The notes: generated from the sequence alone by a model not told the origin. A stretch of DNA of 64,000 bases from Bugula neritina (GCA_964035545.1 OZ037773.1:8089751-8153750); one strand, 5' to 3'. Shown: positions 6,551 to 63,909, numbered from the stretch's first letter. Numbers and translations are program-made.

Positions 6551-9500
6551 TCATACTGTAGTCCATTTGCTTATGTCTAGAGATGGAATGCTACTGCAAG
6601 CCAGTTCCTCATTTCTACAATGTAAAAACAGGTTCTACTAACAATTGTAGGTTCCTGATCCTTCCCATTAGACTTTTATTGTAAGCCCTAGAAGTACTGC
6701 TGACTCACATTCAGATAGCATACATAATAAATGTTGTCATTTGTCAAATTACATACTTTGTAAGTATTTTCTAAAGGTTTTCTACTAGTCAATCATGCGC
6801 AGACGCACAACTCCTAATCTATGTTTTGTAAAAAACCACTGACTAATAATGAAATTAAAAGCATTTTCAAAAGTTTCCCTATAATCTTGAGATTGTTAAG
6901 AGCTATAAATTCATGAGAGTGAGTCATGTATACCTAACAAAGATTTGGTAAAAAAAACTCTGCATTCCGTAGGTGTTGGATGTAGGTAAATATTGGATGC
7001 AGGTAAGTGTTTGATGTAGGTAAGTGTTTGATGTAGGTAAGTATTTGATGTAGGTAAGTGTTTGATGCAGGGAAGTGTTGTATACAGGTCAGCATTTAAT
7101 GTAGGTAAGCGTTTGATGTAGGTAAGCGTTTGATGTAGGTAAGTATTTAATGTAGGTAAGTATTTAATGTAGGTAAGTATTTAATGTAGGTAAGTATTTA
7201 ATGTAGGTAAGTATTTAATGTAGGTAAGTATTTAATGTAGGTAAGTATTTAATGTAGGTAAGCGTTTGCTGTAGGTAGCTTTTGGAAGCAGGTAAGTGTT
7301 GGATTTGAGTAAGTATAGTATGAAAGCTGACTTACCCCACATCTTGCACTAGGAAGAGAGACGGTCTGGAGGTAGTGACATCCACGTTGGCACAGTAAAG
7401 ACTGGCTAATGTAACTTTTCTTATCTCTTTCAACTGATCTGTAGCAAGACTCAACATATAAATATACACATCATTATATTACATGAAAATAGCACAGCTG
7501 TGGTCTTTTAGTTAGACTGCTGGCGAGCAATTAGACATATATTATTATATATAAAAGCACAGCAGCATTTTGGTAATGTTTTAGCTATTTCAAACTAGCT
7601 TCATAGGGGCAGATTATTTAATGCACTACTTATCAACCTTGCGAGTAAATGTACTCTCACTATACTTATTACTACTATAATCAGAGTCAAATAGCATGTC
7701 TATGATAAGCATTTCATTATTGCACATTTTTACGCATTCATGTTACGCATCCATTCTGTGTATATATACACAAGTTCCCCCTTTCTTGTACTAACTAAGC
7801 TACACAAGATGCAGCTACCACGCAGCTACTACTCCAAAGAGTCAGTGTATTGGTCTACCAACCTCTGGTGAACCTTGTTGTAGGGTCATCAGTCTCATGC
7901 CAGAACCTGTCTCCATACTTCAACAACTCAAACTGTTTACCAATGATGTTAGCAAATGTTGGGCCGACAATTCCACCGTCCAGAGGAGTTTCAGACAAGC
8001 CTGGTAACAAGTGCATTAGATATTAGGCTAATGCAAATGATAGGTATAAAAATAGTAATATAAAAAAGAGTATATTTTAGCTGTGATGATGTATAAAAAG
8101 TAGTTCCTTACCTCCTGGAAACAGTTCTACGTCTTCTGTTCTTCTGTAAACCTGTCTGAGGGCCTCCATTGATGGCATGTCATGGGTGCCTCCCTGAACC
8201 AGCTGGGTGAAGTTAGTCGCTACCCCTAAGTGGAAGTTCCTCCTACAATGTTGTGCAGTACACTGAATAGACTGGTGCAACTTATGAACTTATTGCTTGT
8301 ACATTCATAGATAACTAGTTGGGCTTCTAATGAAAAATCCTAAATGGTGCAAATAGTCATAAAAAGCTCTCTCTGATCACTTTAAACTAGTTAATACTCT
8401 GCTAATTCCATACAGTTGTTACCCCTTTCAATTTATGCTAGTTACTACCCCTCCTACCTGACGTCATTGTAGCTGGCTATCCCATGGTCTCTTCCTCTTT
8501 GGATGTTCAGAGCTGGGAGATCAAGATGGCCACCAAACAAAGTATCTCTTATCTACCATAACACAGAATATTGTCTGTTATTTGCCATAACATAAGATAT
8601 TATATGTTATCTACATTACATAGAATATCTTTATAGAAAACTTACTTAGTGGGTTGTAACTAAAACCATTTAGCCAGTTAAACTGTAGGCTGTGAAAAGT
8701 ATCATATGTAGTTAAGTAAAGTGGTTAATATGAAATCTTTAGGGACATATAGTATATATAAAGTGGCTTGGTAGTTAGATACTGTGTATATATAAAGTAT
8801 AGGTAGTTAATTACTCTGTATACTATAAGTGTATATAGGTAGCTATTTATACTGCATGTGCATGTATATATGGAGTAATTTGGTTGTTAGGTACTGTGTA
8901 TATATGGAGCAGATAGAAAGTTAGTTACTCTGTATATTATAAGTGGGTAGGTACTTACTCCGGTGGTCACAAATCTGTCACATCCCCTCATATTGTCACT
9001 GGACAGACCTTTTAGCATGGCGTGACTTCCTTTAAAATAAATAACAGAATAGAATCAGATGTTAGCCAAGGCGTCATATCTTATACATTTGTTTTGAGTA
9101 ATGTATACATATACTAAGCAGCAAACATATTTGCTTAAAAATTCAGTGTGTTGTAGGTATAATATATATAACCTACCATATGAATTCAGTGTGTTGTAGG
9201 TATAATATATATAACCTACCATATGAATTCAGTGTGTTGTAGGTATAATATATATAACCTACCATATGAATTCAGTGTGTTGTAGGTACTAAACATGTCT
9301 CCAATGTCCACAGAGTCAGTATCTGACCGAGAGAATGTTTGTCTGACCAAAGAGTGACCAAATCTGAAGGCGGCCGTGGAAAACTCATTTCTACAAAACA
9401 TTCCACAACAATTTGTTACTAGAGCTTGGCGTTAGGAAATATGTAACCTACACCAAGTTTACAATACTATTTAGTAGGCTTTACAATATATACTATAATT

Positions 9501-12500
9501 TTATATGCATGCAATTGCGTTATATAAATATCATATATTCGTTATTTGGTAGCATTTCATTATTTATATTATAATATTAAGGCATAGCAGTGTATTGTCT
9601 TTAACAAGTCATTATTTCCAACCTGTTACAGAAAAAAAACATTGTTTAAAGTTTAGCAATTTTGTGGTTAATGTCAACATATATTTTATCACATTCAAGT
9701 GTTTATAAAATTGAAGAATTCTCATTGACTAGTTTTAGAACTAAGCTTCATATAAGATTGTTCAGTAAACTTATTCTATAAGTCACACTTACAATATTCC
9801 GGCATCCACAGTATTAGAGTAGTCTGTGAACCTTCCACTCTGTAAGAGATTCAGATTGTATTTTTGCATAATTTGAGGACCCAAGACTACTGGTAAAAAC
9901 TCGTTGTAGGTTATCCGTTGTAGAATGGCTCCAATGATCTTTCTTGTAGTCTAAAAAAACAGCTCAAAAATCTACATTGTGCTCAGTTTGTACATTGTAA
10001 ATCATATATTATGGTATGAAATTCCTTCCTTCATTAGGTCATAAATTGCTTTTTATTTAAGAAATTCTTATAGTAACTTGGACTTGGAGCTTTACTAACA
10101 AATATAGCTCATTAAACTCTGAAACACTGAAATTATTTTATCAAGTTTTAGATAACTCAAATAATTGTTAACCTCTTTAATTTAAGACAATAAAAGTCAA
10201 CAAAATTGGTGCAGGTTTTACCTGATATGTCAGTTCATCATCTTGCAGAGTAGGTTGAAGTAGATCTGCCAGTCTGTTGTGTTCTCGAAGGAACAAAGTG
10301 TGGAGGCTCGTTAAAGCAGCTAAAAATGTAATCGATCAGCATGTCAATGATATTATACGTATAACATGTCATGATATTACACACTTATATTATATATGGT
10401 ATTGCAAACGGTATTACACATAATATAATATATGACATAATCACTGTCTCATACAGTAATACACATACAATATATGATGAAAAGCATGCACTCAATGATA
10501 TTATCCTTGTAAAATACCCAAGGCGTACAATGTAACTATAAACGCATACAGTGTTCCACTACATTATTTCACTTGGATTGCATCTTTTTACAAATATAAG
10601 TATCATGAAAACACAATCAGACTCAACTTTAAACCCACATTTCTAGCACATCTTTTTAGTTCAACTACTTTTTATTGTGCTTTACAGGGTTCAGTAGTAA
10701 ACAAGCTGTTAAAATGTGCTAGTTTAGAATTGCCTTCCCTTTCTCAACTGGTTTCAAGGATTTACCTTGTTCACTGTTCCTCACATCCCCAGCATCAAAG
10801 TGGCACTCATTTTCAGGGTCAGCTGAGCAGCTGGGCAGATTGTCTTTAGCCAATGGCAGTCTTTCTTGACCATTATGAAGCTACAACACAGATTAGAATT
10901 GTGTTGAATTTTATTGTTTATCATAATAATATATTATATAATGTAATATAATATATTATATATTGTAATATAATATATCCAATGTTTCATTGCTCCTTGC
11001 AATATATTATACCCTAATCTATCACTATAATAATATAATGTATTATATAATAAAATATATACAATATAGTATAATGTAATATATATAATAAAAAACATTA
11101 CAATATAATGAACGCTGTCTCATCATGTAATGATACAATATACAATGTTGCACCATTTTCTAATATGTTATACATACAGGCTTGTGTTATTTACAATATA
11201 AATATTATGCCATGCACTAAAACGCTTGTAATCTACTCACACTGCTGTTCAACTTTCCTCCCACAAAGGTTCGGAGTGAGTCAGCCTTGGTATTGCTGCT
11301 GCCGTAAACTTGAGAGCCGTCAACGTAAGCTGTGATGTCATTCAGTTGGTACCTCTCAACTAGATTACAAGTAATACAATAATTATAGTATGACTTTTGA
11401 TAGCAAGGAAATTCACCAATAATTACCATTTTTCGTCGACTGAAAGTTCTAACTTTTCCATAGATTTACTTTTAAAAAGTCAATTCCATTTATAGACGTT
11501 TTATATTTGACTTGATTAGATATTTTGTACACTGCCTGGGTGCATATATAGCTGTGAATTGGATGCTTATGCAAAACCTCTACTTAATCCATAACGTACA
11601 ACAAAGGTTTGCCGTAGCACCAGCACATTATCTTTCTTGGCAGATATTACTACCAGGAGAGGGTTTACCTGGGTCGTTAGGTAAACCAGGAACAGGGGCG
11701 GATCTAAAGAACTCCATACAAGTGACGTCAGGTCCAAATACTGCATCGTTGGATATGGAGATGGGGAAACACTCCTTTTGGGCACTTGTCCATTGATCCT
11801 TTGGTAGAGTGCAACAGGTTTCTCTGTAATATGAGATATTGTGCTTCAAATTATATAAACATTATATTAATTAAAAATGCATCACGTATACTATACATAC
11901 TATAAATATTACATGTATATCAATCTAATGTAATATATACTTTATTATGTGTATATAATATATTATGCATATTGCATTATAGAATATAACATAATATATG
12001 CAATGTATTATAGTTTATGCTGTGATATATTACATATTGCATATAATATATTACACAATTTACATAACATGACATAATTTGCATAATGTATTACATAATT
12101 CATATATTGCATATGATGAATTACATAATGTAATATTACATATATTGTATATAAAACATTACATAATGCAATACTATATAGTTATAAGTTCAAGTTTACA
12201 AGTACATTCAATTAGTTTATCAAACAATGGAGTTGTCTACTTTTTCTAAAATACCTCTCTGCCAACATACCTGACATGCTCAATCTCTTCAAAGGCTTCA
12301 GGGGAAAGAGTGATGTCATGATCAAGAAACTGTCCGTAGTTCATGAGGAGATGCGTGAACTTAGTGCTGTCAATAGTCGTCGTCTCATGGACGGCTACAG
12401 AGACCTCTCTCGCTGACTTCAGGCTTCCACTTGAAAGGAATGGAGAGGTTCTTGGCTTGTTTATACCTGCATGCAGTAGATAGTAAAAAGGGTTTTTATG

Positions 12501-14094: not shown

Positions 14095-14199
14095 TTTCCT
14101 CTTCAGATTTATGGAGGTGCAATTACTGGTTCTGTATAAACTGTTAGTGCTGTCTTGTATGGAGCAGAGATAGAAGTCAACTGTATTGTATAGAGTTGA

Positions 14200-14239
14200 G
14201 ACTGCAAGTGATGTTTCTACATGCTGACTGCCGTTTATA
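14200..14239 (-). promoter_or_regulatory. Probable TATA box plus Inr-like core promoter of peroxidase A
   Basis: TATAAA on the minus strand at 14234-14239, with GCAGTC about 30 nt downstream (~14200-14205), about 110 nt before the ATG at 14094. Confidence 0.4.
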
Positions 14240-16360: not shown

Positions 16361-19300
16361 CTAATAGCTAGGGCTGAAAAATTTTGATCGAATGTTCATG
16401 GGAGGTAGATTAAAGTTGAAAGGTCTGAATCTGAAGGGGTTTCTTGTGCCACGTGGTGTATGTATGGGGCCGGAAAATGGTCGAGGGTGAGCAGATCCTT
16501 CTCTCCAATGGTTTAGGTTCAACTTGGGGATGGTGTCACAGCGAACTGGTGGGTTACTGCAATAATAGAATATATAATTACTATCATGCACTTCTTAGGA
16601 TGGCCTGCTTAGTGTACTTAGTCACATGTGATAATTGTCACTAACTCTAACGCTATATTGTAACTAATCTCAACAGTTCAAATATTATACACGTGATATC
16701 TAAAATATAAAACATAAAAGTCATCTTAAATACAAGAAATAGAGCAAACAGCTATAGAAAACACCTGCTTTAATTGATATGCAAAATTTAGAGTCAAAGT
16801 TACATCTCAAATATAAAGTTTAGAGCACATTAAATACTTCAAGTATATAAAATATGAAATATATATGCAACATGCAAGATTTTAGAAACTAATATAAATA
16901 TAAATATATCTTACGTTGGTCCCTCAGCTTTGATCAGTTGTTTGCGAACTCTGGCGTTTGGTACATGCTCGCAAAACAATGTGGAAAACGTGACTTTTCG
17001 AATTTCAGCCAACTGAGCTAGTAACAAAAGTTGAAATTGAATCAATAAAAATTTAAAGCTATGTACAAATTCACAAACTAAAGAAGTTTTTAAATCTAAC
17101 CGTAGATATATTATACTAGCTATGCAAGTATAAAAAAGTGATAGTAGCGTAGGAAACAGGCCATAATTTGTTAGAAGTTCCATCATGAATTTATAATTCT
17201 TATTGGATGCTACATGTCTGGTGTATAGGCAATGAAGCATATGACCTTCACAATGTTTGCTTTATGCTATGATAAGACCTGAGCAAATGGGAAGCAGAAT
17301 GTAGTTCATTTTTCACATCATTTGTTTGGCATGTGAGTGTAACAATTATATTCACAATAGAACACTTCTGGCACTTACCATCAGTGAATCCAATTTTCTG
17401 GTCTGTAGTCTCATGCCAGAACCTGTCACCATATCTCAGCTTCTTGAACTGCATGGCAATGATGTGAGCAAACGTCTCTCCTACAACTCCTCCAGGTACA
17501 GGCGTTTCTGTCATACCTGTCAGGTACACGATTATGTTACCACGGTGAGGGTTTGACAACTAGTGTGTTTATTGGCAACTAACAAACAGTGCATTAAGAT
17601 GGTCTGGCAGCCATATTGTAATCCAGCATAGACACACTTTTTACAGAGCACAAGGAATTTGATGTTTCAATAGAGAACAATTAGTAATAGAGCACAAGTC
17701 TTAGTATTAGCTACACTTTCTCAAAGTAGAAAACTACAATATTAACTGAGCTCTCTTTCTCTCAGGAGAAGGAAGATTGCTGCTTCATAAAAATTACCTC
17801 CTGGAAAAGCCTCAATATCCTCCGAATGTGGGTAGATTTTCTTGAAGTCATTGACCATAGTCAGAGAGTGAGTGCTGCCAACCATAGCATTCCAGTCTGT
17901 GTAGACATGTAACCTGAGTGCCCTCCTAAAAGAGTGGTAACGTTTGTTAGCTATTGAATCAAAATTTATAGAGTCACTATTTAGTAATAAGTTTATATAG
18001 CTGTCATCATTTATAAAGTGGCTACTGTCTTATTTTAAATAGCAACCCATAGTTTCTTCTTTTTCAAAACCATAAGCCAAAATAAGTTTTAATAAAGTCT
18101 CTGTGCTTTAGTCTGTAGTTAGTATACAGAAAGGAAAACATTTTCTGTTTAAAGCGAATAATTCATATTGACTACTATTTCACCCAGTTGCTACAATTAC
18201 TCTATGCGGTTACTGCTTTATGTATTTGATAATAATCGTCGACCTCCGACTTCCTTAATGATGTTTTCTACTAAGATTTACTACTTTACTAACCTGATAT
18301 CATTGTAGCTGCTAATACCATGATCTCTTGCTCTTTGAACATTGAATGATACGAGGTCCATTTCCATTCCAAACAATTCATTCCTCACCTATAAGAAATA
18401 ACCAAACATCTATTATCATAAATGGTGGTCTAGACACTCTGACTTTCACTGCGTTGCTATTCCTCCACATTATATGGATGCTCAATGAATTTGTAGTTGT
18501 GGTTTGCATTAACTTAAGGTTGCGGTTGTTGCAACCATTTTCAAACATCAATTAAAAAATTCATTTGTATAAATGTGAAACTTGGAAATCTAGTGAATAT
18601 CGCCTGGTGATCCCATAGAAGAGTGCCAAATTAACTTTCTCAAAAGCCAGTGAAACCAATCTTGATCATTAGTACGAACAGCATGTGAATAATATAGTAT
18701 ATAGCCTAGTGGCTGAAACATCTATATGATTGGGTCAATGTTCTATTTTTAGACGTTGTTGTGATACTCTAGGGCATCTGTTAAGAGTGTTCAGGCTATG
18801 AAGCAATCCTTTAGAACTCACTGAATGAAATGCAAGTCAATGAGGCATGACATCGTATGATGTCATATGTAGGTTACTAACTGGGACTATTTTAAATATA
18901 AATCTGCAAAATAACAAAATATTTGTTCTACTAAAGTTTATAATGATGTCAATGTAACTGTTACACCACATGTTTTGATTAATACACGTATTGCTACGCA
19001 CTTTTGACTTGTGTCATAATATAATGCAAATTGAAACTTTAGCTTGAACTTCCAACTATTGAAACTTTTGATCTGTGAATTGGGAATTGCAAGTTCCCAG
19101 GCTAGAGTTTGTGTAATGTATGTCAAAAATTGATAATTCTTACTCCTTTGGTGACGAATCTGTCACAGGCTTCAATTCTGTCGGAAATAACACCTCGAAG
19201 CATGCCATTCGTACCTAAAAGCAAAGAATATAATGACTGTTTGCATGAAATATCAACTAGTGGTATATTCAGTGTATTCAAGCTGCTTATAGTAAGAGTT

Positions 19301-22300: not shown

Positions 22301-25300
22301 TATAGAGACATTAGGCTGCTGTAGATTCAATTAGTCATTTTTCATATTGAATAACTTTGCTTTTTGTTATACTAACAGGCAAATTTACTCATTTCTACAT
22401 TTTTTTATTTGAATTGAATTTATTTTATAAACTTTGTGACAATCACATTATTAGCATTGAGTAAGAGATTTTACGGAGTTGTCTTACTTTATACAGCTGA
22501 GCTTAGAAAATTGTAAGTTAGAATTAAAAAGTACTGCAAATTGTGATAAGGTTAATTGTGGGCTTCAAGCTGAGGCAATCTATCAAGAGTTAATAAACTG
22601 GAAGACCAAAGAGATTTTGCACTAACAACACAAAGTATGAACTTTAAAAACATTTTCAACTAGCATATATAATTTATTTCTCAAAAATATAGCAAGTAGC
22701 AGAAAATCGTAATCTTGCCCAATTAATTTCTTAATGCTTCCTTTTTTAAAGATTTAAGTTTTTTGCATATGATTGCCACAAAACCAATATAAACGGATTA
22801 AAACTGAAATAGATTAAGCTGATGTTAGTTGATAACTTAATCCCTTTAAAATAAAATTTATGGAAGGAAATATTACTCATTAAAACCATTCCTAATTAGT
22901 TTATGGGAATTAAAAGCGTGCTCGGGTATTAGCATGATAAATAGCATACCTTAGAAAGAAGTTTTCCACCTTTGAAGCTTCTCAGCACATCTGACTTAAG
23001 TTTAGTGCTGCCATACACCATTGAGCCATCAATAAATGAGGTCAGATCATTCATCTGGTATCTCAGAACTGTAAGACGACTCCAAACATGTAAAAACTCA
23101 GAAATTGCAACATGTTAAAGATTTTTGATAAAATTTCAACTGCTCATGCATTTTACTGCTGCATTCATTTTAACAGTAATTAATTTATGTTTTTTCATTA
23201 AAAAAATGTTATTGGTGAAAAGTTTGAAATATACTAATTTTAACTAAATCATTATTTTGTGAACTGCAAAAGTATAATGCACAACTTGAGAATATCAACA
23301 TTTTTGGAACCTTTCAATAAAGTATCATTTAATCTTACATAATGACTTGAAATAATACTTTCTTATATAACACTATCGTTCCCTGTTTAATACTCATGAA
23401 GTTTTAAACTATACAACTGAAGTTCAGCAGACTGCATGCTCTATAATATCATGAGAAATTGGTAGAATGGGAAAATCTGTTTTAAATTTCATTTAGTTGT
23501 GAGTTTTGCTAGTTTTAAATTAGGTTTCTTGAAGTTTATAATAAAACTGAGCAGATAAACATCTAGATATTTTCAGGGTTCCTGTTTTTGGCAATCACAC
23601 TTGACTGGAATGGTAATCTGATAGCATGCCATTTCCTATACACTACCGGTTTGTATCTATTATAAGTATAGAACATGTAAATCACATTAACCAATGCATT
23701 GTGGCTGATATTATACAGGTAAACGTAGATGTTGAATATTAATTTAGCTTCATTTGCTAAGCAAGTATTGTCAGATTCTCACCCACTATAAGTTTATACT
23801 ATTGTTACTTTGTTATGAAGGAACTGTGAGAAAAACCTGTAAACGTGCCAATTCAGCTTTTCAAGTAAACAAGGCTTTGTGTTTTGAATAATTGCTATAA
23901 GAGGTTTGGTTTAACGTCTAGTATAAAATATAGATGTCACCAGAAAAAAAGTTAAAAAACTAGACACAAAATATGTTACCAATCTTAGTAGTTTATCAAC
24001 TACATATAATCATTGTATCATTAAGCAATCTTGCATTTGCATAAAAATTAGTTTTTGAATAAAAATTACTATAACCCAGCAAATAGTATTCATAGCCTAC
24101 GCTTCTCTAAATTTCTAAATATAAATATAATGATGCATCTTGTGGTATGCAATGTGCCCTATGAGTAGATTGCTGAAAGACGCCCTGATACATTTTATTC
24201 TAGGTTAGACGACACTATTTTCTTTATCAATTTATTAAACAGGTTAGCATAGTCTGTTAAACAGCATGTAAAGTATGTTAAAAATATAAAAAAATTTACA
24301 TAAAGATGTTTGTACTTTTCCTTGTCAATTAATTTGTACTTTGTTAGTGCGTTCAGAAGGTAGTAGATATTGTTATATAGATAAAGATTTGTACAGATGC
24401 AAAGTTATGTATAGACAGAGTTTTATATGTTTTATATATGTTTGTATAGAGATAGAGTTATATAGAAGTAGTGTTACAGCAAGAATGTTAAATAGAAACA
24501 ACTGTACTGCATGGTTCTGAAGTGAAATAAAAGAACAAATCTTCTACTAACCTGGTTGATTAGGAAGGCCAGGAATTGGAGCTGAACGCAGGAATGGAAT
24601 ACATCCTCGTCTGTAGACAGGGTCATAGGAGGTGGAGATGGGAAAACATTCATGGAGGTTGTCGGTGTTTGACAGGAATTCACAGCATCTTGTCCTGAAA
24701 CATACAGGTGTTACTTTAAACTAAGCCTTCTCTTTTCATATTGATATCAACTGAGCAGTTTTAGTAGTCTAACAGTAAGAATGCTGGTCTAGCATGAACA
24801 TGAGTGTATATATACTGCATTCTGTGCTACGGAAAGGGAAGGGTGTCCTATCAGCCTGTGCAAATACTGCTTGCAATGTAGGAAATTAGGTGAAGAAAAT
24901 TTTGTGATAAACTAAGAAATTTAAAGAAATCATTTCATGAACTCACGCAAGTTAATAGTTGCCATCCCAGTGAGAAAACCCCTGATGAAAAAGGTTTTTG
25001 TTAGATTGGGCTAAGGACTTATTCAGATAGGGCACAGGAGCAATTATGACTGGATGCTCTTCCTAACACCACCAATTGCCTATACTAGGGTTCGAACCCA
25101 TGACTTAGTGTTCACTAAGCCAAATTCTCTAACCCCTAGACCATGGCTGCTCCTCAATGAGTCTAAAGACATCTTTATAATATTTCTACTAATGTTTTTA
25201 TGTACTGCAACATCACACAATATACAAGTAGTTATGGTAAGAAAACTTAAATCATCTTCAATTGAATAAAGAGATGTCTCATGTTCCTTTAGTGCAATTA

Positions 25301-28300
25301 TTAATGAAATATTTGATATCACTAGCAATGCAGTAATGTATGCATAGTTTGAAAACGAAACACCCATTTATCATAAGCTATGGAAAACAGTAAACTTCAT
25401 ACCAGATATAATTATAGCCATTGCATTAGGATCTATCACATGACAGGTTCAACATTCTAAGCGTGTCAAGGTTATTTATAGCTTCTAATAAGCTTTAAAA
25501 TCAATTAATTAAAAATATAGTTTGATTAGATATTGCATTAGCATATGAAATTAATATAAACCTATTTACTATGCCATATAAATAATTTATTGGTTTACTA
25601 ATGTAATAATGCAGCAGGACACACTTGTGCACTTTGAACCGTTAATCATGATAAACGAAGAAGATAAGCTGACATTTTCTTAAATGTTTATGAAAGAAAA
25701 ATTAATTTAAAGTTTCTGGTCATGATGATTTATGACTGAAGTGTGTCTACGGCTTAGCGTTCTTTTCTGATCTAATAATGATTAACATAATCTTGTGGAA
25801 ATGAAATTCACTTCCAGTTTCCTGGATACACTCATTTACCACGTTTTCAATATTTTAATGCCCAGAATGGTTGGTAGGAACCAATGTGGTTGATAAGGCT
25901 GACCATTCCAGCTAGAGAAATATTCAATAAAACCATTGCCATGGCAAGTTGTAGCAACTACATCAATGCATTTCGTTAGCAACAACATGGTCATTGGCCC
26001 TTGTTACTTCACAGATGCTTTCTATAAATATTGCTCTTTATAGCTGTATTTTTATTCTTTATTGCTAACTTCTTTTTAAGTTGAGGAAATCTAAATTTTA
26101 GCTACTAATGTCAGCTTTTATTAAATTACATGTCAATTAATATTTTTGACTCATTATTTAAGTCTCATATATAGGTTCATATAAATAGGCATTGCTTTCA
26201 GCATATTCATTATAAAATTTATCCTATAACATAAAAGTAATAATCATTGCACACAGTAAAAAATCTAAGCGGCTGTGTAAAATAAAATGCTCATGATAAA
26301 ACGTTATGACTGCCTAATGTAAAATATTCTTATGTAAAAAGATGGGAGGAAGAACCATAGCCATTTTTATGAATCTAAAGCTACCCTTAAAAACAAGAAT
26401 AATTTTACAGGCAGTTTTGATTTGAGGGCGACTGAGCGAAATAATTTGGGATTCTTGAGTTTGGAGCTGGGCGTTCCAAGTTCCAACTTCCACTCCCAAC
26501 TCTAAACTTCAGAATCAAAACTACTGCACTCAGTTACCTCCAACTCAAAGCTACTTATAAAACAATCCAAAAAAACAAGTTAACAAAGCGCTTATTTTTG
26601 ATGAGTAGTGTTCTATCTAAGCTCACCCGCAAGATCTCTACACACATACAAATAACTTTAACTATCTTACTTGTTGATCTCTTCTCCTCCTTCAGAACCA
26701 GATTCAGGACTCAGAGTAATGTCATGGTCAATGAACTGACCCCAGTTCATAAGCAAGTGGGAGTGGTCATTGCTGATGTTAGATGTGGTGAGATGGATGT
26801 CAAGAGATACCCTCCTTGCGCTGGGTAGTATGTCTTTAGAGTAATGGTACTTTATACGTGGAGAGTTGAAACCTGTAGGCAAATTTAGAAATATGTAAAC
26901 AATAGAGGAGAGGCATGCTATACCACCCATCCTTGGAAGTGAGTATCCTCATAGGTGCTTAAGCTATGTAAGGGTAAGGTTCCTAGAAGTCAGCTGTTGT
27001 AATACAGCGTATGGTCAAGGGGAGCTGCTCTAGGTGCTACCAAATTTGTTTGAAATTTAAATCAGTGTCTAGCCACTGAAGCAATAGTTATACGTGTCAC
27101 TTTTTAATCTGGGAAGTAAAAGCAAAAGTTAATAAATTTTGAACTCATCAATTTAGAGCACTTTTAGATAAATAATTTATGTGACATTTGAATAAATTCA
27201 GTAATCTGCTTGCCAAGTGATAGACATAGATTAACAACATGTGGCAAACAATTTTTTAGTATTTTCAACATGGCACTATTTAGTTCAATTACTTTTTGAA
27301 CCCTAGCTAATCAAAATATAGATTAAATGAGTTTTTCTTCACATTGGTACTCCATACAGTTGACCTTCCATTTTTGTTGCCAGGGTCATTTGGTGTATTA
27401 GCATCTTACCATCCTGGTATCTCTGTGGTGACATTCTAATAAGAGGAGTTTTGGCAGCCCCCCTCCAAGGGTGGAGTAGGTTGTTACACGTGCCATCAAT
27501 TGTCCTGAACTCGGCGTGAGGATCACAGGCTGGGCGTTTGAAGAATGGGTTTTGGCTGGCTGCAAACACCAAATACAGAGTTCCAAACATGTCAACAGAC
27601 ATCTTCAAAGATGACATTTTGGTTAGTGGCCAAAACCTCTTTTGATAAAAGCTGTTAAAAGTAGTTAATTGATATAAATGCATCTCATAATAATAGACTA
27701 ATAGACGTCTAGCCATATTTTATGTGAAAATAAAATTTTGACCAACTGTTGAGATTAAAAGTCGCTTTATTTTTAGATATGAAAATTACTTACATAATCT
27801 GGAAGGTCGTCCATGTCTAAAACATAAAATACACAGAAAAACTATAATTCCAACAGTGAGAAATTTTGACAAAGAAATATTTTTACTTATTTTCAAAATC
27901 AAATTATTTTTGTCCCCTCTAGTATCATTTGATAACACAAGAGCTATTCAATTAGTGTCAAGTTTTGTGAATTCTTGACAACCAGCTAATACGTATCACG
28001 CTATAAAAATCGGAAAAGTTTGGGCTCCAATGAAATTACTTGCTGTAACTTTCTATAGGCTGAAGCTTATTTTTAACCAGTTTTTATAGTAACAGCTATT
28101 TTTATAGAAACTATAGATAAACAATGTTGAGCAATTTAAGTTTTCAAAGCATAAAAATGATGCCATAAAACATTTTCAACGCCTGTAAATAATCAGACTT
28201 TTATGGCCCATTAAATAGCTTGTCACCTGTTTTGATGAATGTGGCATGTATACAAACAGTAGGAAGACATTAAACCTTAATTTATTAATTTTTACCACCA

Positions 28301-37551: not shown

Positions 37552-37737
37552 GAGCAGCCATGGTGTAGTTGTTAGAGTGCTGGCCTAATAAGAACGGGGT
37601 TAGTGGTTTGATTCTAAACACGGTGATAATGTTAGAAAAGAAAGAGCATTTACTCATAATTCTTAAAGTCATAATTTTTTAAGTATTAAAATGTTTCCTC
37701 ATCAGGGGCTTTTACAGGGATAACAATTATAAACTCC
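37552..37737 (+). mobile_element. tRNA-derived SINE, copy 2 (more decayed)
   Basis: GAGCAGCCATGGTGTAGTTGTTAGAG..GGTTTGATTC..AAAGAGCATTTACTCATAAT..CATCAGGGGCTTTTACAGGGATAACAATTATAAACT, colinear with copy 1. Confidence 0.6.
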
Positions 37738-38963: not shown

Positions 38964-41900
38964 TCAGAACAACTTAGACCTTCGTCGCTGTCTACGACGC
39001 CTGTTGGCTCTTCGTGAAAGCCTACCATTAAGTTTCTGGTTTTGTCTTCTCCTGCGATTCTGCCTCCTTCTGGATTGAGTCTGCTGCTGCTGCTTTCTTC
39101 TATTAGAATGTTGATTCAACTGCTGGTTTAGCTGGTCAGTATTACGAATATTACTCCCTCCGTATGAGCCAGCTCTCCATTTTGTCAGATCAATTCTTGG
39201 GATATTTTTGCAGTTGATTGTAGGATTACTAAAACACCATATGACATTTCACATTGCTTCTTATTGATCAATAATACTCTGTATATTCTAAGCGTTTAAT
39301 TATATATGGATTAAGAATATAATTAATTTAGGGCATATAATGTGCAAAAAAAATCTTAAATCGATAGCTAGTTGTGAAAATTTAGTGTCTAGAAGTCATC
39401 ATTAAAACTTTGCGTCTAAACAAATCAATCATCTGTCAGGTTAAATTATTGAACATAATTAATTTCTTCTGTAGCACTGAACAGAAACTTGGAAATTATT
39501 GCAAAACTTAGTCGGCTAAGACTGATATGGAAATGCCTTCTAATAAATTATGTGTGCATATAAAATATGTCAATTGCTTTCATCTAAGCAGCTGCAACAA
39601 GCAATTGCAATTAGTCAATTCTCTCTCTCTCACACGCACGCACGCACGCACACACGCACGCACACACGCACGCACGTCTTTTATAAATGCACTACACAGA
39701 TGCTATAATTTGATATTGAAGAAATGTACCTGGAACTTTGTAGAAGAAACAGCTTCCTTCTCACTTGAGCACCTGGCACATTGTCGCAATAAATGGCTGC
39801 TAAAGAAATTTTCCTGATTTCTTGGAGTTGGTCTAAAATATCAAAACACATTTATTTACATTATTATCATGCAGGATCAGAAAGCTTGCAATATATAGAT
39901 TGTGTTTTGCAAATGCCATTAGGTAGTTCTAGTTCTACAGGTAAACGGTAGGATTGAATTTACTTGCAAAGTAAAACCCCTTGACAACTGCTATATAAAG
40001 AAAAATTGGTTTTCACAACTTGACTAAGTTATCATTATATCGAACTTATTAAACATTTTATTTTTGTATAGTTTACAAAAATAATGTAAAGTGAAATTTG
40101 AAAAACTTGAAAAACAGATTTAATGTTATTGGAGCCAAATTATTTTCTATAACCATGTATAGTAATTATAAACTTGGTTTAGTAGAAATAGCAATTATCA
40201 CCCCAATGGAATAACAATTAGGAAAGTGACACCTTCTAATGGTTTTTAGATTAAAATTAAAGTAATCTTAGATAAGCAGGGACATAAGGTGATACAATAT
40301 TACGTATACTTTAGCTTTTTCACCTAATCTAGCTATTAATTTTAACATTAGGCAAATATTACCTCCGATCTGTATTTTAATTATATTGCAATAATGCCTT
40401 AAATTAGACTGAAACGCTATAATGTGTTAATTAACATACCATCAGTGAATCCAACAAACTCATCAGGAGTTTCATGCCAAAATCTGTCTCCGTATTTCAG
40501 CTGATGGAACTGTTTGCCGATGATGTGACCGAATGTCTCCCCAACCACTCCGCCTTCCAACACCAGCTCAGAGAGACCTGGCAGGAGAGTAAGAGGTTCT
40601 AGCTCATGTGACATGTGACATTTATTATAAGACATGTGAAATACATCATGTGACATGTGACATGTGAGATCTCTTATTTGACATTTGAGATGCATTACGT
40701 CACATGCATCGTGTGACATGATGCATGTGACATTTGACAATCATTGGGTATTATACCACGTATGCCATGTGACATGTGCCGTGTGACAGTAAGTCTCTGT
40801 CATGAAAAATCTTGTCCTCTGTGCATAATTGTTTAAGCCATTTGCAATTTTCTATTTTCTGCTTGACATTTATTGCTTTGGTTTTATTATGACCATTATT
40901 ACAATACGTTACACTATCACTGGTACAATAAAGAAATTCAAATCAAATATCAGACCACCAATGTCATGGTCATTATCCAGCTTGTATTATGCAGCTGAAA
41001 GAGTGGTAATTTTGTTCTTGTTTAAATAAATCAATCATATTTGGACAAAATGCTTAATTAACAAAAAACCTCTAAGAATGAAAATTCTAAATTAATTTGA
41101 AATATAGCATCCCATTCTTAGGTTAGTAGAACTTTTTACATGATAGTTTTCAGCTCTTTTAGTTATGACTGTAATCTTTAGAATCTCTGAACTGTGAACT
41201 TTTTCAAATTTCGTTATGCTGCTAAAATTACGTTGCTAGTTATTTATAGACATATCAGTATAGGCATTTACCTCCAGGAAATCCTTCTATATCTTCAGGA
41301 TGTGGGTACACTTTCTTTAGGTCATTAACCACATCAAATGGGTGAGTTACCCCAGCCATATACTCATATTGGACCACCGGTGGTAGATGTAGGCTTCGTC
41401 TATCAAGTAATGCATACAAGAGTTGGTTATGCAAGACAGGTATTAAACTTAATCTTTTAATTTTGTTGAGTATGTTTTGTGTGTAATAAATTCATTTATA
41501 TAAATAGCTTATGTAGAATTAGGTTTATGTATAGATATTATTGAAAATAGAAAATATATTTTGTTCCTATATACTCGTATGTATACATTGAGTTAGCATA
41601 TAGCTATTTCAAGTGCTCATTGTTTATATTAAGTCATGGCAGAGCTATTTCAAATACTCAAATGTCTATACTATGGCAAGATCAACTACTTCTACAAGCA
41701 CAATGAGTCACCAGATTTCTATAGTCTTGGTTCTCTGTCGACCCCCCTTTGCCCCATTGACTAGTATACCCCTGTCTGCTGTAGATATAGCCCTGTTGAG
41801 ATTTCTGAGTGAATCCATTTAAAGTAACAGCAATGGGAATTATAGCATACAAACACAACATGGCAAACTTAGCATACCTGATGTTATTATAACTGTCCAT

Positions 41901-44900
41901 CCCATGGTCTCTGCCTCTCTGTATGTTAAATGCCTGCAGGTCTGCCTCATCCCCAAACAGTTTGTCTCGTAGCTGCATTAAGAACACAGTCTTATTATTT
42001 ATAGCATTACACTATAGTTCTTTAAGTTGCAAAGTAACAAAGGCTTTAGGCTGCTTTAAAAAGTAACATATTATATTCTACATAAAGGGTTTTAGTATAA
42101 TGTATAAATTTGGAATAAAACAGAAGTTTAAGGTTTTTATCAGTGGTAGAACAATATAAGATGTAAATATTTTGTTCCATTATTTCAACCAACCCAGAAG
42201 TAATAGAATATTTTTATATTAACTTTGGAGTTATCATCACTCTCAAATCAGTGTTTGCATGCGTATAACTATAGACTATATATGCTGACTAACCCCCATT
42301 GTAACAAATCTCTCACAAGATTCCATGGGATCTCTAGTTATTCCTTTCATAAAACCATCAATGCCTGGCAATACACACATGCACACATGATATAATAATG
42401 TTAGTGTGATACACCCATAAGGTATATACTGCGCATGATACTATAAAAAGTATGTTGTAAATATAGTACATTTATTCAAAAGTAAAAATGCTAGTCATTT
42501 TAAGTACACATTTTTTCATTTGGATTAGTATTTTTTAGAAATCGCAGAATTTATTTCCATTGACATGTAATATGAATGTTTGTAATTAGGGTAGTGCTTG
42601 CATGCAGTTGTAACCTAATGTTATTTCTAAAAAGACCTAGTAGCATTTTGAGAAAATATTAGTCATAAACTGGATCACGCATTAAATTTTTATACATAGT
42701 CATATGTTATATAAGGCATCAGAATTAGGGCTATAAATTAAATTCGTTCTCACAATATTTAATATCTGTGAGCTCAGATAACAACAAATAAAAATAGCTG
42801 TGGGTACTTTAGCATCGAATAATACAGCTTCTGTTGACCAATAAAGCGTGACAGATTACAAGCTATGCAAATGACAGACAACTCCCAAACCTACAACCTA
42901 CCATACTTATGGGTTGTTTTAAAGGAATCAAACATCTCCTCCAAGTCTGTCTGCTGGGATGCCGAGTGAGAGAACATCTGTCGGACCAGAGAGTGACCAA
43001 ACCGGAATGCTGCCGTACTAAACTCCATCCTGTAAGTCAGCATACAGTGGATGATTATACTCAGCTTTGGAAAGTTTTAAATGCATTAGTAAGATTTGTC
43101 TTTCCATGACATAGATAGAGTAACTCTGGTTTACCAATTGTATTAATATTGTTTCTAAATTAACATAAGCAACTGTTTCCTTAGTGTTTAAAATAACTAG
43201 CACCAGTTTATAGTGACTATTCCTGTGAGAATCACTGAAACTTTCTTTTTAACGAGTTAAAAAAATTTTCTAAAATGGCACAATTGAGCAATTTCAAGTG
43301 AATGCTCTTTCTAACATCACCGCTGAACTCGTGTTTACTAGATCAGCACTTTAGCCTCTTCCAATGTTTGAAAGTTGAAATAAATGTTACTCACAGCACA
43401 GAAGGATCGGCATCTTCAGAATAGCCTTGGAACCTGCCATGCTCTCTCAGAGAGAGACCATAGAACCGCATCAACCTTGGACCAATGATTAGCGGTAAGA
43501 ACTCTCCGTAAACCAGCCTCTGCATCATGCCAATCATGATCTTTCTTGCTGTCTGCAATTGCATGACTTCCATTATGACATCATGCTATATAGTCACATG
43601 ACTTCCACTATGACATTATGCTATATGGTCACATGACTTCCATTATGACATCATGCTATATGGTCACATGACTTCCATTATGACATCATGCTATATGGTC
43701 ACATGACTTCCACTATTACAAGTTTATGATTACATGACTTAAACTATTATAATATCATATCATGTGACGACTTTTGTACGGTGCAACATGTGTGTGGAAA
43801 GATTTTGAGAACAGCTTGCATTGCAATAATAATATAAGAATATAAAAGCCTTATTTTTTGTGATGCACCACTGGAGGAAGGAATTACAGTTTACTCATAA
43901 CCACTCTTTGTTAATTAAGCAAAATCTTATTGATTAAAAAACACAATGCATCTGACAATTTGCGCTACATTTTCTTTTTATTACTGTGTAGTTAGGTTGA
44001 GACATACTTGGTAGAGTTCTTCATCCACCCAACCAGGGTTTAGTTTGGCGAGTTCCACAGCTATGCGGTTATGTTCTCTAAGGAAGAGAGTGTGTACACT
44101 GGTCAGCCCAGCTGTAACAAAACATGACACTAATTAATATATATATTATACGAAGTATATAATATATATACTCAGTTATATATCATATACAGCACATATA
44201 CTCAGTTATATATTATATACAGTACATATACCCAGTAATATATACATATATTATATACAGTACATATACTCAGTTATATATTATATACAGTACATATACT
44301 CAGTCAAATAGTATGTACCATATACAGTACATATATTATATACAGTACATATATTATATACAGTACATATATTATATACAGTACATATACCCATCTATAT
44401 ATATATTATATACAGTACATATACTCAGTCATATATCATAGACAGTACATATACTCAGTTATATATTATATACAGTACATATACTCAGTCATATATCATA
44501 TACAGCACATATACCCATCTATATATTATATACAGTACATATACTCAGTAATATATCACAGACAGCACATATATTATATACAGTACATATACTCAGTTAT
44601 ATATTATCATATACAGTACATATATTATATACAGTACATACTATACAATGACTTACCTTGCTCACTACTTCTGACGTCCCCGGCAGCAAATTGACACTCA
44701 GCCCGTGCTGCCAGACAGTTTTTAGGGTTGTCTTTCTCTTGGGGAAGTAACTCCTCTCCCTTCACACGCTGAAACATGAAACTTCAGCATCAGTATAATG
44801 TTATATATATTTGACACGAACAACACCTGGTATAGCTCTTCTATATTTATTATAACAATAATGTTATTCACTGGTATTAGAATGGTTTTAAATGCATGAA

Positions 44901-47900
44901 TATGTATGAATTTTCTGCCAGTTGTGCATATCATGTAATAATAATTATGACATGAGAGGACAATTTCTTCAGTATTTTGATTACAATAAATTCAATGATG
45001 CGCTACATGCAGATTGATGAATCAATGTTATTTCAAAAGATATAACTTTTTGCTGCAGCTTTTGAATTTCCTGCAGTTGATTAAAAAATAACTAAACTAA
45101 ATACTGCATAATTATAGTCATTCAAAAAAAGTCATTTGCCCTCTAATGAAATAGTAACTTACATTAGACTTGAGTTTTCCTCCAACATAACTTCTTAGCA
45201 CCGCTGCCTTCAGTTTGGTGCTGCCATAGATTTGTGATGCATCAATAAACGCTGTCAAGTCATTCAACTGGAATCTGATGGCTGCAATTTATCAGATTAG
45301 GAAATTATATCACTCGAACAGACAATATAAGAACATCAATAATCGAACAAAAAAATTCTTTATGAAATATTGTGCACACATTTTATGCATATTATATAAT
45401 TAAATAAAAATCATTGGTTCATAGTAAGCAACTTCCATACAACGTGTAAGTTTTATTAGGTAGCTTTAAAGTGGTAAGTTTCCCAAATAGGACAAAACAG
45501 AGATATACATGTAGGTGAGGAAATAAAGTGTAAATTAGGCAAACTACATAGCCTAATAATAAAATAATGGTGAATCTAAAATAAATTATATTATTTGTCA
45601 CTAAGTTGTACCTTCAGAGCCGGGGAAACCGGGTACTGCTGCAGATCTTAAAAAAGGCACACACGTTCTCTTAAAGATAGGGTCATGAGGAGTGAATATG
45701 GGGAAACAGTCCTTTAGGTTCTCTTTAGCATAATCTTCTGGAGAAGTCTTGCAGCACTGCTTCCTAAAAGTTGTAGAACGCAGCAAATAAAAAATAGATT
45801 CTACTGCAACATACCAACTTTGTAAAGCTGATTTACTTGTACTAGATAAGCAAGATGGCCCCCTGGTGTGTGTACGAATATCTTTAGCTATAGCTTATAT
45901 GTAGTATGAAAACCTGCACAAATATTTTTCAATTAAATGAGTAATTTTTCTAACATGAAACAATTTAGAATGTCTAAATTCTAGGCATTTTATGCGCTTA
46001 GGCTTGACATTTTTTATTAGAACTGAAATGCAACCACTTGCAACAACTTGTTTTTTGCATATTTGTTTGGGTGTTTATGTGTCTGCCTATTTATAGTATT
46101 AGCAATGAAATATGCAAGTGGAAGTTCACTGCAATAAACAATAATCCTTCAGTCTCAAAGTGCACTGATAGAAAGGATCTCGTTTACCAAGTGTCACTTT
46201 CAGCTCTTACTACCAAATCTATGATCATTGCTAGCCCTATGATGCTCTGACTCATAGACTTTCTAATATATTAGAATTAACACGTAAAGTCATTAAACTT
46301 TAGGTAAAGAGAATCAGCTTTTCAGAGTAAACCTTGAAGCAATCTGACTATAAACTATCAAAACCCTACAGCAGAATGCGTTGAATTAAAGAACATTACT
46401 ATTTAACAAAGTTTGGTGAGAGGAAGCATAACTCCATAATAAAGTAAGAAGTGGATAGAATTCTTACTTCTCAGCTTCCTGTCCTCCTTCGCCTCCTGAC
46501 TCCGGTGACAGCGTGATGTCGTGGTCGACAAATTGGCCGAAGTTCATCAGCAGATGTGAGAAGGTATTGCTGATGTTGCTCTGAGTCTTGATAACGCTGA
46601 GGGAGACTTTCCGAGCTGTTGGCAAGTCTCCAGGTGAGTAGAAGTAGGTAGTTCTTGGTGTATTTACTCCTGTAACACATCGTTATTGTAAGACAGCTCT
46701 GTGTGTGTCAAATGTTATACTAGTCCAAGAGTTTATTAAACAGTATAACAGAGCTGGTAGCTGGGAAAGCCTGAGAGTATGTAGACATATAAAATATAAT
46801 ATACATATAATATCAACATATAAAAATACCTGCACACCTATCCATGCATAATATAGACATATAAATATGCATGGATACATAATATGTATACATGCATATT
46901 TATATATTATACATACATGATACATATAGACATATAACTAGACATATATATATCTACATAAGCATATAGACATATATGCTTATGCATAGTATAGTCAAGT
47001 CATGTATCCATATATGCAGCTTAAAAATAATATTTACTTATCACACTTTAAATATATTAGCAAGTATTATTTGTACAGTGTTCAAGTGTTCAAGTGTAAC
47101 GATCATTACTCAAATTTATTACAAAATTACTATTGTATGCTCATGTTTAAAGGAATGTTTCTTGGTGGTAGGAACAATTTTTCAGGCTTAAATAAAGCGT
47201 TTGAATGCAGTTTAAATTGACAAGCCATTGGTTAAATATTTAAAAATTCAAACCAAAAATTTTTTAAGCTCTTGCTAGTCAATAGAATGCTTTTAGAGTT
47301 GTTTGCTAAAAAATACAGTATTCTAAAAGACTTTATTTGTGAAAAAATCAATGCCGTTCATCTTGATAATGTCATGAATATATAAATATTGAAGCATTTT
47401 CTATCAAATATGTAAAACATTGTAATTACCATCTTCATATGTGTTGAGGGTCATTCTTTGCAGGGGGGTCTTAGCAGCCCCTAGCCAGGGGTCGGGTATA
47501 TTGTTGCACGTCCCATCAATTGTCCTATACTTAGACCTAAAATTGCAGCTTGGGTCTGTTGCATAGGGGTTGTTGATATCTAAAAATTTCAAGAGCACTA
47601 ATTGAATATAAAAATTAAATTTTAAAAAAATGAACTTAATTTATAGGCTGATTTGATTTAATTGCTTCATTAAGCATTAATTTCAAGTGGTAAATACTGA
47701 AGCAATAAAAGTTTGAAGCAATCAAATGCTGAAGAGAGTTTATTATATTTATCTCCAAATTAGAGTTTAGTTTCTTTGAATAACTGCGAAGTAAAAAAGT
47801 AATTGCTGTTATATTGCTGCTTGCAGATACACGGATAACTCTCCTAAAGTTTACTTACCCAAACCTCCAGTTCTTGGGTTTCTAAAACAAAATAAGAACC

Positions 47901-48733
47901 CAGTTGTTAATCGAGGCTTTAAATATCTACTTTCTCAATTTTTAGATGCATTTTGGTAAAATTTAGTTTTATAATATTTACATAAACAGAGCTGTTGGGA
48001 GCATAAACATTTTTACTGAGCTGGTTTATGCTTGTGAGAGTAAGCATAATATAAAATTTAGGCAGCTAGTATTTGTTTTTTTATTCTAAGTACAATTATA
48101 TATTAAATTTTGAATCTGGTTATAAAATATTTCAAAATCAATAATATAATAAAATTTTAATGTAATTTGCAAACTTTTTATAAAATCTATTTTGGGTACC
48201 TAATTTGTTTCTTACATTAACAAAATATTTACTTTACATTATGCAGCTTACGCTTGGACTATAACAGTAAATGAAATAATAATTTTTTTAAAAACATCTA
48301 TGTATGTATCAATGTGTGAGTGTTGCCAAGAGTGAAATATTTATTTAATCACCCCAAATAGAAAAAGTTAAAATACTATCTGAAGCTATTATTAATTAAA
48401 ATGTGAGTATAAAATAAATTTCATTATTGCAATTAAAATATTTTTGAAAATAAAATGAAGAACTCTGTAACAGTCTTTTTCCAAATAATTGAATAACAAA
48501 AATATTGCGCCGACACAATTTGATGTTATGTAACAAAGCAAGAAGTATTTTAGGCAAAAAGCAATAGTAACCTACCCACTCTTGAGTACCCTCTCAAACA
48601 CTCTGTCCAGATTCTTCAGAGATAAGGCATTGTTGTCTGGTTTATTGACTGTCAGGTGGACACTGTGTCGGTACTCCAAATCTCTGCCCCTGAAAATATG
48701 CAACCGCATTTATAGGGTCTAAGTCTATAGCTG

Positions 48734-48809
<76 letters not shown>

Positions 48810-48814
48810 TTATA

Positions 48815-48867
<53 letters not shown>

Positions 48868-48877
48868 ATATATATTT

Positions 48878-48910
<33 letters not shown>

Positions 48911-49075
48911 TATATTACTATAATAGTATATTTGGTGTGTTCATCAGATAAATTATAGCTGGTCTAGTAACCATTAGATATTTTATTCTACTGATGACAA
49001 GTTCATACTGCATGTGACTCACCATACAGTAAGAGCAAACAGCACCATCAGCCATGTTGTCTCAAGTCCCTTCAT
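38964..49075 (-). CDS. Secreted animal heme peroxidase, paralog C, 17 exons, ~704 aa, Arg/Gln-rich basic C-terminal tail
   Basis: Exons: 49023-49075, 48576-48689, 47859-47881, 47430-47579, 46468-46669, 45612-45763, 45163-45281, 44657-44768, 44008-44111, 43395-43552, 42902-43029, 42294-42364, 41878-41972, 41272-41399, 40440-40577, 39730-39832, 38964-39228. Total 2115 nt, open frame. Signal peptide [19 protein letters not shown]. Motifs: [62 protein letters not shown]. Confidence 0.94.
39620..39675. repeat. (CT)n/(CACG)n microsatellite
   Basis: Direct reading. Confidence 0.85.
40605..40790. repeat. Degenerate (CATGTGA)n repeat, gene C intron 14
   Basis: Many CATGTGA/ACATGTG units adjacent to the exon 15 acceptor. 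Confidence 0.75.
43562..43740. repeat. 35-bp tandem repeat (~4.5 copies), gene C intron 9
   Basis: CATGACTTCCATTATGACATCATGCTATATGGTCA units starting at 43562, 43597, 43632, 43667 and 43702. Confidence 0.9.
44140..44645. repeat. AT-rich minisatellite filling gene C intron 8
   Basis: ATATACAGTACATAT(ACTCAGTTATAT)ATT units of ~18-30 bp. Confidence 0.9.
48736..48913. repeat. (TA)n microsatellite, gene C intron 1
   Basis: Direct reading. Confidence 0.95.

Positions 49076-51927: not shown

Positions 51928-52207
<280 letters not shown>

Positions 52208-63654: not shown

Positions 63655-63909
<255 letters not shown>

Follow-up and report, generated by a model that had tools for sequence, protein, structure and literature searches.

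The 64,000-nucleotide stretch of Bugula neritina DNA analysed here (GCA_964035545.1 OZ037773.1:8089751-8153750, hereafter the window) carries three head-to-tail genes, designated A, B, and C, all intact and coding for haem peroxidases of secreted type and with a single domain, which belong to the peroxidase-cyclooxygenase superfamily. Each of them keeps every residue of a lactoperoxidase (LPO)-type active site, and all three belong to an array of at least five tandem genes that extends to the left of the window and has been in tandem since before Bugula and Watersipora split. As judged from the predicted proteins, the paralogs differ chiefly in the linker between signal peptide and peroxidase domain and in the stretch past the last element of the fold, where B and C carry tails. 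Taken as a whole, the reading of A, B, and C as three members of an ancient array of secreted haem peroxidases, with tails that serve electrostatic retention, is favoured here with moderate confidence. Gene models were predicted from the genomic sequence; single exons or database proteins were used in database searches, and the spliced models entered only alignments, local BLAST comparisons with fetched proteins, and trees.

Family membership was evaluated with the Pfam An_peroxidase profile (PF03098), along which the exons of gene C are collinear over positions 1-500 of 530. Eight of the ten gene C segments scanned matched it, in order and with E<=6e-4, seven of the eight lying above the 25-bit cut-off, and a whole-genome scan with the same profile returned exon matches for A, B, and C. 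One gene C exon also matches the chains of eosinophil peroxidase (EPO), myeloperoxidase (MPO), and LPO near the distal W-G-Q-x-x-D-H-D sequence. Regarding proteins of solved structure, LPO, MPO, and EPO (2ips, 5mfa, 8ogi) match the catalytic domain of a Watersipora relative of these genes over its full length with E ~1e-81 (8e-82 for LPO), whereas DUOX1 is a far weaker match in the PDB (1e-29 vs 1e-81). The LPO fold ends a few residues past the motif aligned with ...DLxxW of the bryozoan proteins. Differences from the vertebrate enzymes are nonetheless clear, since identity is ~35%, the bryozoan genes show no chordate orthology and form a clade of their own, and B and C have basic tails.

Close relatives were sought with an exon 5 profile, built from the five paralogs, against a representative protein library. 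The best full-length match, P0002 (RefSeq XP_067938459.1, 'chorion peroxidase-like'), comes from the cheilostome bryozoan Watersipora subatra and aligns nearly end to end with the five models at 46-57% identity (57% between gene C residues 8-635 and P0002 residues 10-639). A word search with P0002 retrieved only two further close relatives, namely P0168, a 710-aa Watersipora 'peroxidasin-like' protein encoded on the same 66.6-Mb chromosome as P0002, and P0169, B. neritina EB796_012540, which is 95% identical to gene A end to end, start and stop being alike. This match places the organism in B. neritina in its broad sense or very near to it, and the 5% protein divergence of gene A suggests that the window and the GenBank assembly represent different lineages of the B. 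neritina complex. Two B. neritina fragments, P0286 ('Pxd') and P0287 (EB796_012537), contain the exons that encode the tails of C and B, respectively, and share a 216-kb GenBank contig with P0169, the gene A counterpart; the junction between exons 16 and 17 of gene C is identical to that of P0286. The public records of all these relatives are automatic annotations, those of Bugula for B and C covering fragments of one or two exons, and a literature search found no paper on the clade, the array, or the tails.

Superfamily members share the G-Q-x-x-D-H-D and R-x-x-E signatures, a proximal His paired with an Asn, and a site for calcium (PMC4420034, PMC3533774), the distal X-G-Q-X-X-D-H-D-X sequence providing in turn the halide-binding Gln, the ester-forming Asp, the catalytic His, and the calcium-binding Asp (PMC4420034). 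As in LPO and MPO, all these elements are found in A, B, and C. The distal sequence G-Q-F-x-D-H-D, encoded by exon 5, is invariant in the three genes, both flanking paralogs, and the three database relatives, and G-D-x-R-x-S-E-Q, which contains the distal Arg and the ester-forming Glu, is invariant across the clade. The residue following this Glu is Gln in all members, as in LPO, and not the Met that forms the sulfonium link specific to MPO. Likewise, the proximal pair, formed by the His of A-F-R-F-G-H and the Asn of F-N-(I/V)-Q-R with a presumed hydrogen bond between them, is invariant in the eight clade members and corresponds to LPO His351/Asn437, as established from the LPO chain numbering along the alignment (PMC3533774, PMC4420034). 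The same numbering ruled out the His of L-T-S-x-H-T-L as the proximal one, an assignment under which B and C would lack the Asn partner. Finally, the Thr, Phe/Tyr, Asp, and Ser of the calcium motif Thr-x-Phe/Tyr-x-Asp-x-Ser are kept in 8/8 members. Considering this intact set of residues together with the similarity to lactoperoxidase, the cores would carry covalently linked haem and catalyse the H2O2-dependent oxidation of halides, thiocyanate, or phenolic groups in the extracellular medium.

The position ten residues before the proximal His, encoded by exon 11, shows more variability. Of 49 outgroup rows, 41 have Asn here, a residue that the clade retains only in A and its Bugula counterpart P0169. 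C has Met instead and P0168 Leu, and the remaining members (B, the two flanking paralogs, and Watersipora P0002) have Thr.

With respect to domain content, no Pfam domain other than PF03098 was detected in P0168 and P0169 or in the translations of exon 2 and of the tails, and the precomputed Pfam listing gives PF03098 alone for P0002, P0168, and P0169. No 19-residue window outside the N-terminus reaches a hydrophobicity typical of transmembrane segments, and RGD, KGD, and LDV are all absent from A, B, and C. Lacking additional modules, membrane segments, and integrin-binding motifs, the three proteins are therefore neither peroxidasins, nor thyroid peroxidase (TPO)-like proteins, nor dual oxidases, nor, judging from their motifs, classical peroxinectins. 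An earlier interpretation made from the DNA alone (hereafter the sequence-only reading) had likewise found no place in the models for peroxidasin, TPO, or Duox modules, and PF03098 as the sole domain, with no transmembrane segment beyond the signal peptide, bears this out. More specifically, A, B, and C lack the extra domains of peroxidasins (family 2) and the transmembrane anchor and CCP/EGF modules of TPO, and, differently from dual oxidases, in which a degenerate peroxidase domain precedes a transmembrane region, EF hands, and an NADPH-oxidase domain, they end at or shortly after the peroxidase fold (647-704 aa) and have the proximal His. Intergenic DNA (2.3, 9.1, and 5.5 kb) holds no sizeable coding-like open reading frame (ORF) and no further gene or domain. 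Because PF03098 is the sole domain and no coding-like ORF lies between the genes, the public names 'peroxidasin-like' and 'PXDN' for clade members are misnomers.

Close to these genes in general organization are also the peroxinectins and the chorion and salivary peroxidases (family 3, PMC4420034), which are also secreted, single-domain invertebrate An_peroxidases with frequent duplication within genomes. Indeed, the remaining matches in the word search, at 35-41% identity, have as their top non-bryozoan entries invertebrate proteins named 'chorion peroxidase / peroxidase-like'. This closeness, together with a KGD in gm1, the paralog at the left edge of the window and the only array member with this motif, could be taken to indicate adhesion or opsonin proteins of the peroxinectin type, with integrin binding prevailing over catalysis as their main role. 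Such a role is highly improbable for A, B, and C, which are devoid of RGD, KGD, and LDV, conserve all the catalytic residues, and have LPO, MPO, and EPO as nearest solved structures.

Self-comparison of the stop-free segments of the window produced three collinear minus-strand series of ~15 conserved segments each. For the splice models, GT/AG sites were scored near the ends of conserved blocks and the phase with the best total across the five paralogs was taken, this joint evaluation giving a single winner by a wide margin at every intron. A, B, and C (Table 1) result in 17 exons each, without internal stops and with intron phases 2,2,1,1,2,1,0,1,0,2,1,0,2,1,1,2. This independent rebuild matches exactly the three intact paralogs, exon number, phases, and outer coordinates of the sequence-only reading. 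The three-gene cluster proposed there holds within the window, but the array contains at least five genes and runs off the left edge, where the fourth paralog, gm1, continues to about -6465 (698 aa, 17 exons, and the same phases) and a fifth one is located ~18-28 kb left of the window, within the 30 kb of left flank examined.

Table 1. Predicted coding features of the peroxidase array, in window positions and with exons listed from 5' to 3'.
Feature	Position	Strand	Description
Gene A	14094->6551	minus	647 aa, 17 exons; secreted An_peroxidase without C-terminal tail
Gene A, exons 1-9	14094-14036, 13865-13755, 13199-13150, 12951-12799, 12466-12271, 11823-11669, 11359-11241, 10880-10766, 10319-10222	minus	
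Gene A, exons 10-17	9950-9793, 9390-9263, 9029-8959, 8552-8458, 8242-8112, 8000-7863, 7438-7336, 6614-6551	minus	
Gene B	29825->16361	minus	683 aa, 17 exons; secreted An_peroxidase with Pro/Arg/Phe tail
Gene B, exons 1-9	29825-29761, 29113-28997, 27816-27794, 27559-27410, 26872-26671, 24694-24552, 23068-22950, 21823-21712, 20935-20832	minus	
Gene B, exons 10-17	20247-20087, 19860-19736, 19214-19144, 18388-18294, 17925-17798, 17516-17379, 17017-16915, 16556-16361	minus	
Gene C	49075->38964	minus	704 aa, 17 exons; secreted An_peroxidase with Arg/Gln/Asn polycationic tail
Gene C, exons 1-9	49075-49023, 48689-48576, 47881-47859, 47579-47430, 46669-46468, 45763-45612, 45281-45163, 44768-44657, 44111-44008	minus	
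Gene C, exons 10-17	43552-43395, 43029-42902, 42364-42294, 41972-41878, 41399-41272, 40577-40440, 39832-39730, 39228-38964	minus	
Exon 5	C 46468-46669; B 26671-26872; A 12271-12466	minus	Distal signature G-Q-F-x-D-H-D
Exon 11	A 9390-9263; B 19860-19736; C 43029-42902	minus	Holds the position ten residues before the proximal His
Gene B tail	16364..16504	minus	47 aa, net charge +7; 9 Pro, 7 Arg, 7 Phe
Gene C tail	38967..39176	minus	70 aa past the ...DLxxW fold end, net charge +23; three R-x-[KR]-R sites
gm1, 5' end	1..1037	minus	Fourth paralog; exon 1 1037-964, exon 2 527-411, exon 3 start 52-1

Exons display a G+C content of 45-47% vs ~31% for the window, an AT-rich eukaryotic sequence that is not human, and the proteins of A, B, and C are 49-55% identical in pairwise comparisons. 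Blastn with exons masked detected no intron similarity between genes, consistent with the introns having been described as unrelated. The claim that divergence concentrates in exons 3 and 17 holds only in part: both are highly divergent, but exon 1 (23% identity among paralogs) and exon 2 (34%) are equally so. The lowest identities among core exons correspond to exons 14 and 16 (41-42%).

The 5' end of the genes was carefully considered. In each gene, exon 1 is an ATG exon that encodes a hydrophobic signal-like peptide and ends at a phase-2 donor, and exon 2 has a phase-2 acceptor in every array gene. A direct join of exon 2 to exon 4 was discarded, the seeming phase-2 acceptor kept in all five genes being a Phe-Arg codon pair that mimics T-T-Y-A-G. 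The true acceptor of exon 4 lies upstream in each gene, in phase 1 and just 5' of the conserved coding N-P-Y/F...C block, so that a short exon 3 of length 3n+2 is needed. One good candidate was found per gene, of 50 nt in A and of 23 nt in B and C, the micro-exon of gene B being placed from splice sites and phase alone. Neither exon 1 nor exon 3 is conserved in sequence, their basis being splice sites, phase, hydrophobicity, and the end-to-end alignment with Watersipora RefSeq and Bugula GenBank models; the near end-to-end alignment with P0002 thereby supports the predicted exons 1-3. Compared with its 23-50 nt in the three window genes, exon 3 is considerably longer in gm1 (179 nt, 52 to -126), where it specifies a linker of ~60 aa rich in Ala, Pro, and Thr.

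The age of the duplications was addressed with a quick tree of 57 rows and a careful tree of 33 rows (LG+C20 with posterior mean site frequencies, PMSF). Nine other An_peroxidase loci of the same genome were approximated for this purpose from chained tblastn matches, the reference rows of both trees being automatically named invertebrate proteins. In the careful tree, a bryozoan-only clade with support 100/100 unites the five array genes with P0169, P0002, and P0168, and a stem of 0.83 changes/site separates it from the sampled arthropod, mollusc, brachiopod, and amphioxus proteins. Within it, the deepest split sets A and P0169 apart from all other members (99/99); C has Watersipora P0002 as its sister (100/98), with B next to that pair (99/98). 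The sister pairing of C with P0002 places the separation of A, B, and C before the divergence of Bugula and Watersipora, and a Bugula-only clade, a group defined after the tree had been seen, is rejected, being 47 log-likelihood units worse (approximately unbiased (AU) test, p = 0.0115). The old duplication advanced in the sequence-only reading is thus upheld, and the array has been in tandem since before that divergence. As for the lineage-specific character also put forward, it applies at the bryozoan level among the sampled taxa and not at the species level, C having a Watersipora sister. That reading had regarded separate ancient clades with known orthologues as evidence against itself: within cheilostome bryozoans the paralogs do fall in separate old clades with orthologues, and no orthologue of the array genes was found outside bryozoans among the taxa sampled. 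In a survey of lophophorate biomineralisation genes, the 'mantle peroxidase' orthologue of brachiopods and molluscs was reported missing in bryozoans (PMC9484238).

Other peroxidase loci of the genome fall outside the clade, the nearest one being on contig C2 (85/88). At least 12 further An_peroxidase genes are present elsewhere in the genome, among them four in tandem on contig C3 (1.186-1.239 Mb), of which three are nearly identical, and a near-identical pair on contig C7 (9.24 and 9.275 Mb). Scanning the genome with the plant-type peroxidase profile PF00141 gave no match on contig C9, to which the window belongs.

The C-terminal region is one of those in which the paralogs differ most. Gene A stops 3 aa past the fold and gm1 is also tail-less, while the tails of B and C share the last exon with the conserved end of the fold and coincide with the types first described: none in A, Pro/Arg/Phe in B, and Arg/Gln-rich in C. 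The tail of C contains 21 Arg, 3 Lys, 13 Gln, and 9 Asn. Predicted isoelectric points of the cores are ~5.5 for A, 8.2 for B, and 6.7 for C, and both B and C become clearly cationic once their tails are added. The C tail uses five Arg codons at a G+C of 0.46, with the two other frames closed, and both tails have an exon-like G+C. It was also considered as a DNA microsatellite, a possibility rejected because no tandem repeat appears even at low threshold and its Arg codons are mixed. Open runs at random local non-coding positions reach at least 67 codons in 1.9% of cases and at least 46 codons in 5%. Considering that (i) the tails share the exon of the fold end, (ii) their G+C is exon-like, (iii) Arg codons are mixed and no repeat is detected, (iv) open runs of such length are uncommon in the non-coding DNA nearby, and (v) they are also present in GenBank B. 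neritina, the tails of B and C are real, heritable coding sequence, fast-evolving and easily gained, lost, and resized.

The tails were also compared with those of the GenBank lineage. The last exon of gene C matches P0286 in 18/18 residues of the fold end and in 45/52 (87%) of the first 52 tail residues, and that of gene B aligns with P0287 without gaps and with a shared stop, at 15/18 (83%) in the fold end and 31/46 (67%) in the tail. R-x-[KR]-R sites, of the furin type, occur three times in the tail of C and once in that of P0168, a Watersipora protein non-orthologous to C that has its own Arg-rich tail of ~50 residues, and nowhere else in the paralogs.

In the retention reading, the disordered tails of B and C would hold the enzyme by charge on polyanionic matrix or surfaces, and the furin-type sites in the tail of C may permit its release, as in extracellular superoxide dismutase (EC-SOD, SOD3). 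The latter bears a C-terminal, heparin-binding, polybasic tail with convertase sites. The likeness is one of functional analogy, both being secreted redox enzymes with a polybasic extreme C-terminus that contains convertase sites. On the contrary, the enzyme folds are unrelated, the tail of C is much longer and Gln/Asn-rich, and its binding and cleavage are here predicted from its net charge of +23 and its three R-x-[KR]-R sites. By this analogy it is plausible, as a proposal, that each tail sends its enzyme to a different target, in line with the sequence-only reading.

Several observations weigh against such retention, and most of them suit another explanation, namely that the tails are neutral, or nearly so, low-complexity run-ons left after drift of the stop codon, the paralogs differing instead in expression or in the core. 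Watersipora P0002, the sister of C, ends a few residues after the fold and is tail-less, as are A and gm1. Between the two Bugula lineages tails diverge two- to sixfold faster than the core (87% vs 100% identity in the last exon of C and 67% vs 83% in that of B), with several changes altering charge. Moreover, the last 19 residues of the C tail (~+11 in charge and with its densest Arg block) give way to 5 different ones in the GenBank model, so the end of this tail differs between the two assemblies. This replacement fits weak constraint as well as function. Open runs of at least 46 codons, in addition, start at 5% of random non-coding positions in this region. Apart from the tails, the change ten residues before the proximal His means that the cores may not be catalytically equivalent, and exons 1 and 3 are predicted rather than observed. 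Nonetheless, we consider the run-on explanation unlikely, though deserving serious attention, since the tail of B keeps its length and stop without gaps despite 33% divergence, that of C draws on five Arg codons and shows no DNA repeat, both have exon-like G+C, and strongly basic tails occur in two non-orthologous members from two genera.

The distribution of furin-type sites, confined to the tails of C and P0168, could alternatively reflect C-terminal propeptides or precursors of cationic peptides, which convertases would cut into Arg-rich (C) or Pro/Arg-rich (B) antimicrobial-like fragments plus a tail-less enzyme. The Pro/Arg/Phe composition of the B tail recalls indeed that of proline/arginine-rich antimicrobial peptides. 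That tail, however, has no R-x-[KR]-R site, the Pfam scan of the tail translations gave no match to any peptide family, and tail sequences are poorly conserved, which makes a precursor function improbable. Returning to electrostatic retention, a more ambitious version can be formulated. Strongly basic disordered tails, as in C of Bugula and in the non-orthologous P0168 of Watersipora, would here be a recurrent, selected add-on, gained and lost along the array, by which an enzyme that produces oxidants is anchored to polyanionic surfaces of cuticle, adhesive, or microbes. A parallel change in haem chemistry would be signalled by the loss, in every array member but A, of the Asn ten positions upstream of the proximal His. 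This version is put forward as a tentative and rather doubtful proposal. If true, the array would constitute a natural series, with one catalytic core combined with different localisation signals.

Some additional features were observed in the DNA of the array and its surroundings. In gene A, a perfect 43-bp tandem repeat (9140-9288, minus strand; 3.5 copies, 100% identical) spans the last 26 nt of exon 11 and the first 17 nt of the intron, so that the 5' splice site occurs in three identical copies, at 9263, 9220, and 9177. Only 9263 is in frame, and use of 9220 or 9177 would add 43 or 86 nt and lead into a stop; this repeat reflects either a duplication of very recent date or an error of the assembly. 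The last intron of the same gene contains ~20 tandem 17-bp units (6969-7316, with a 51-bp super-unit) starting ~20 nt past the donor of exon 16; as each unit has GGTAAGT on the plus strand, the transcript would carry ~20 copies of ACTTACC, the complement of the consensus donor. Gene B has unusually long introns 4 and 5 (537 and 1976 nt) with G+C-rich patches (24751-25178, 26405-26555, and 26894-27082), including a minus-strand ORF of 95 aa (25080-25367); these patches are without similarity to the other paralogs and could be inserted elements or unused exons. In gene C, an (AT)91 microsatellite (48736-48915) occupies intron 1, between the signal-peptide exon and exon 2. The region to the right of gene C is gene-poor and contains a 368-bp satellite (58342-59613; 3.5 copies, 98%), a 14/84-bp repeat (50276-50564), and long (AG)n tracts (51928-52205 and 63655-63925).

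Overall, the array is a well-formed expansion within a family of enzymes already known, its tails being a modestly unusual variant, and does not represent a new enzyme class or mechanism. Its description also corrects public annotation, in which the Bugula records for B and C are fragmentary and the peroxidasin names wrong. Bryozoans, a major group among fouling animals, have larval adhesives and cuticles that are tanned and in part calcified, and their extracellular oxidative chemistry has hardly been studied. For them, the array provides a defined set of intact and comparable peroxidase genes, one acidic and tail-less and the others neutral to basic with differently charged tails, that can be used to ask how oxidant-generating enzymes are placed outside cells.

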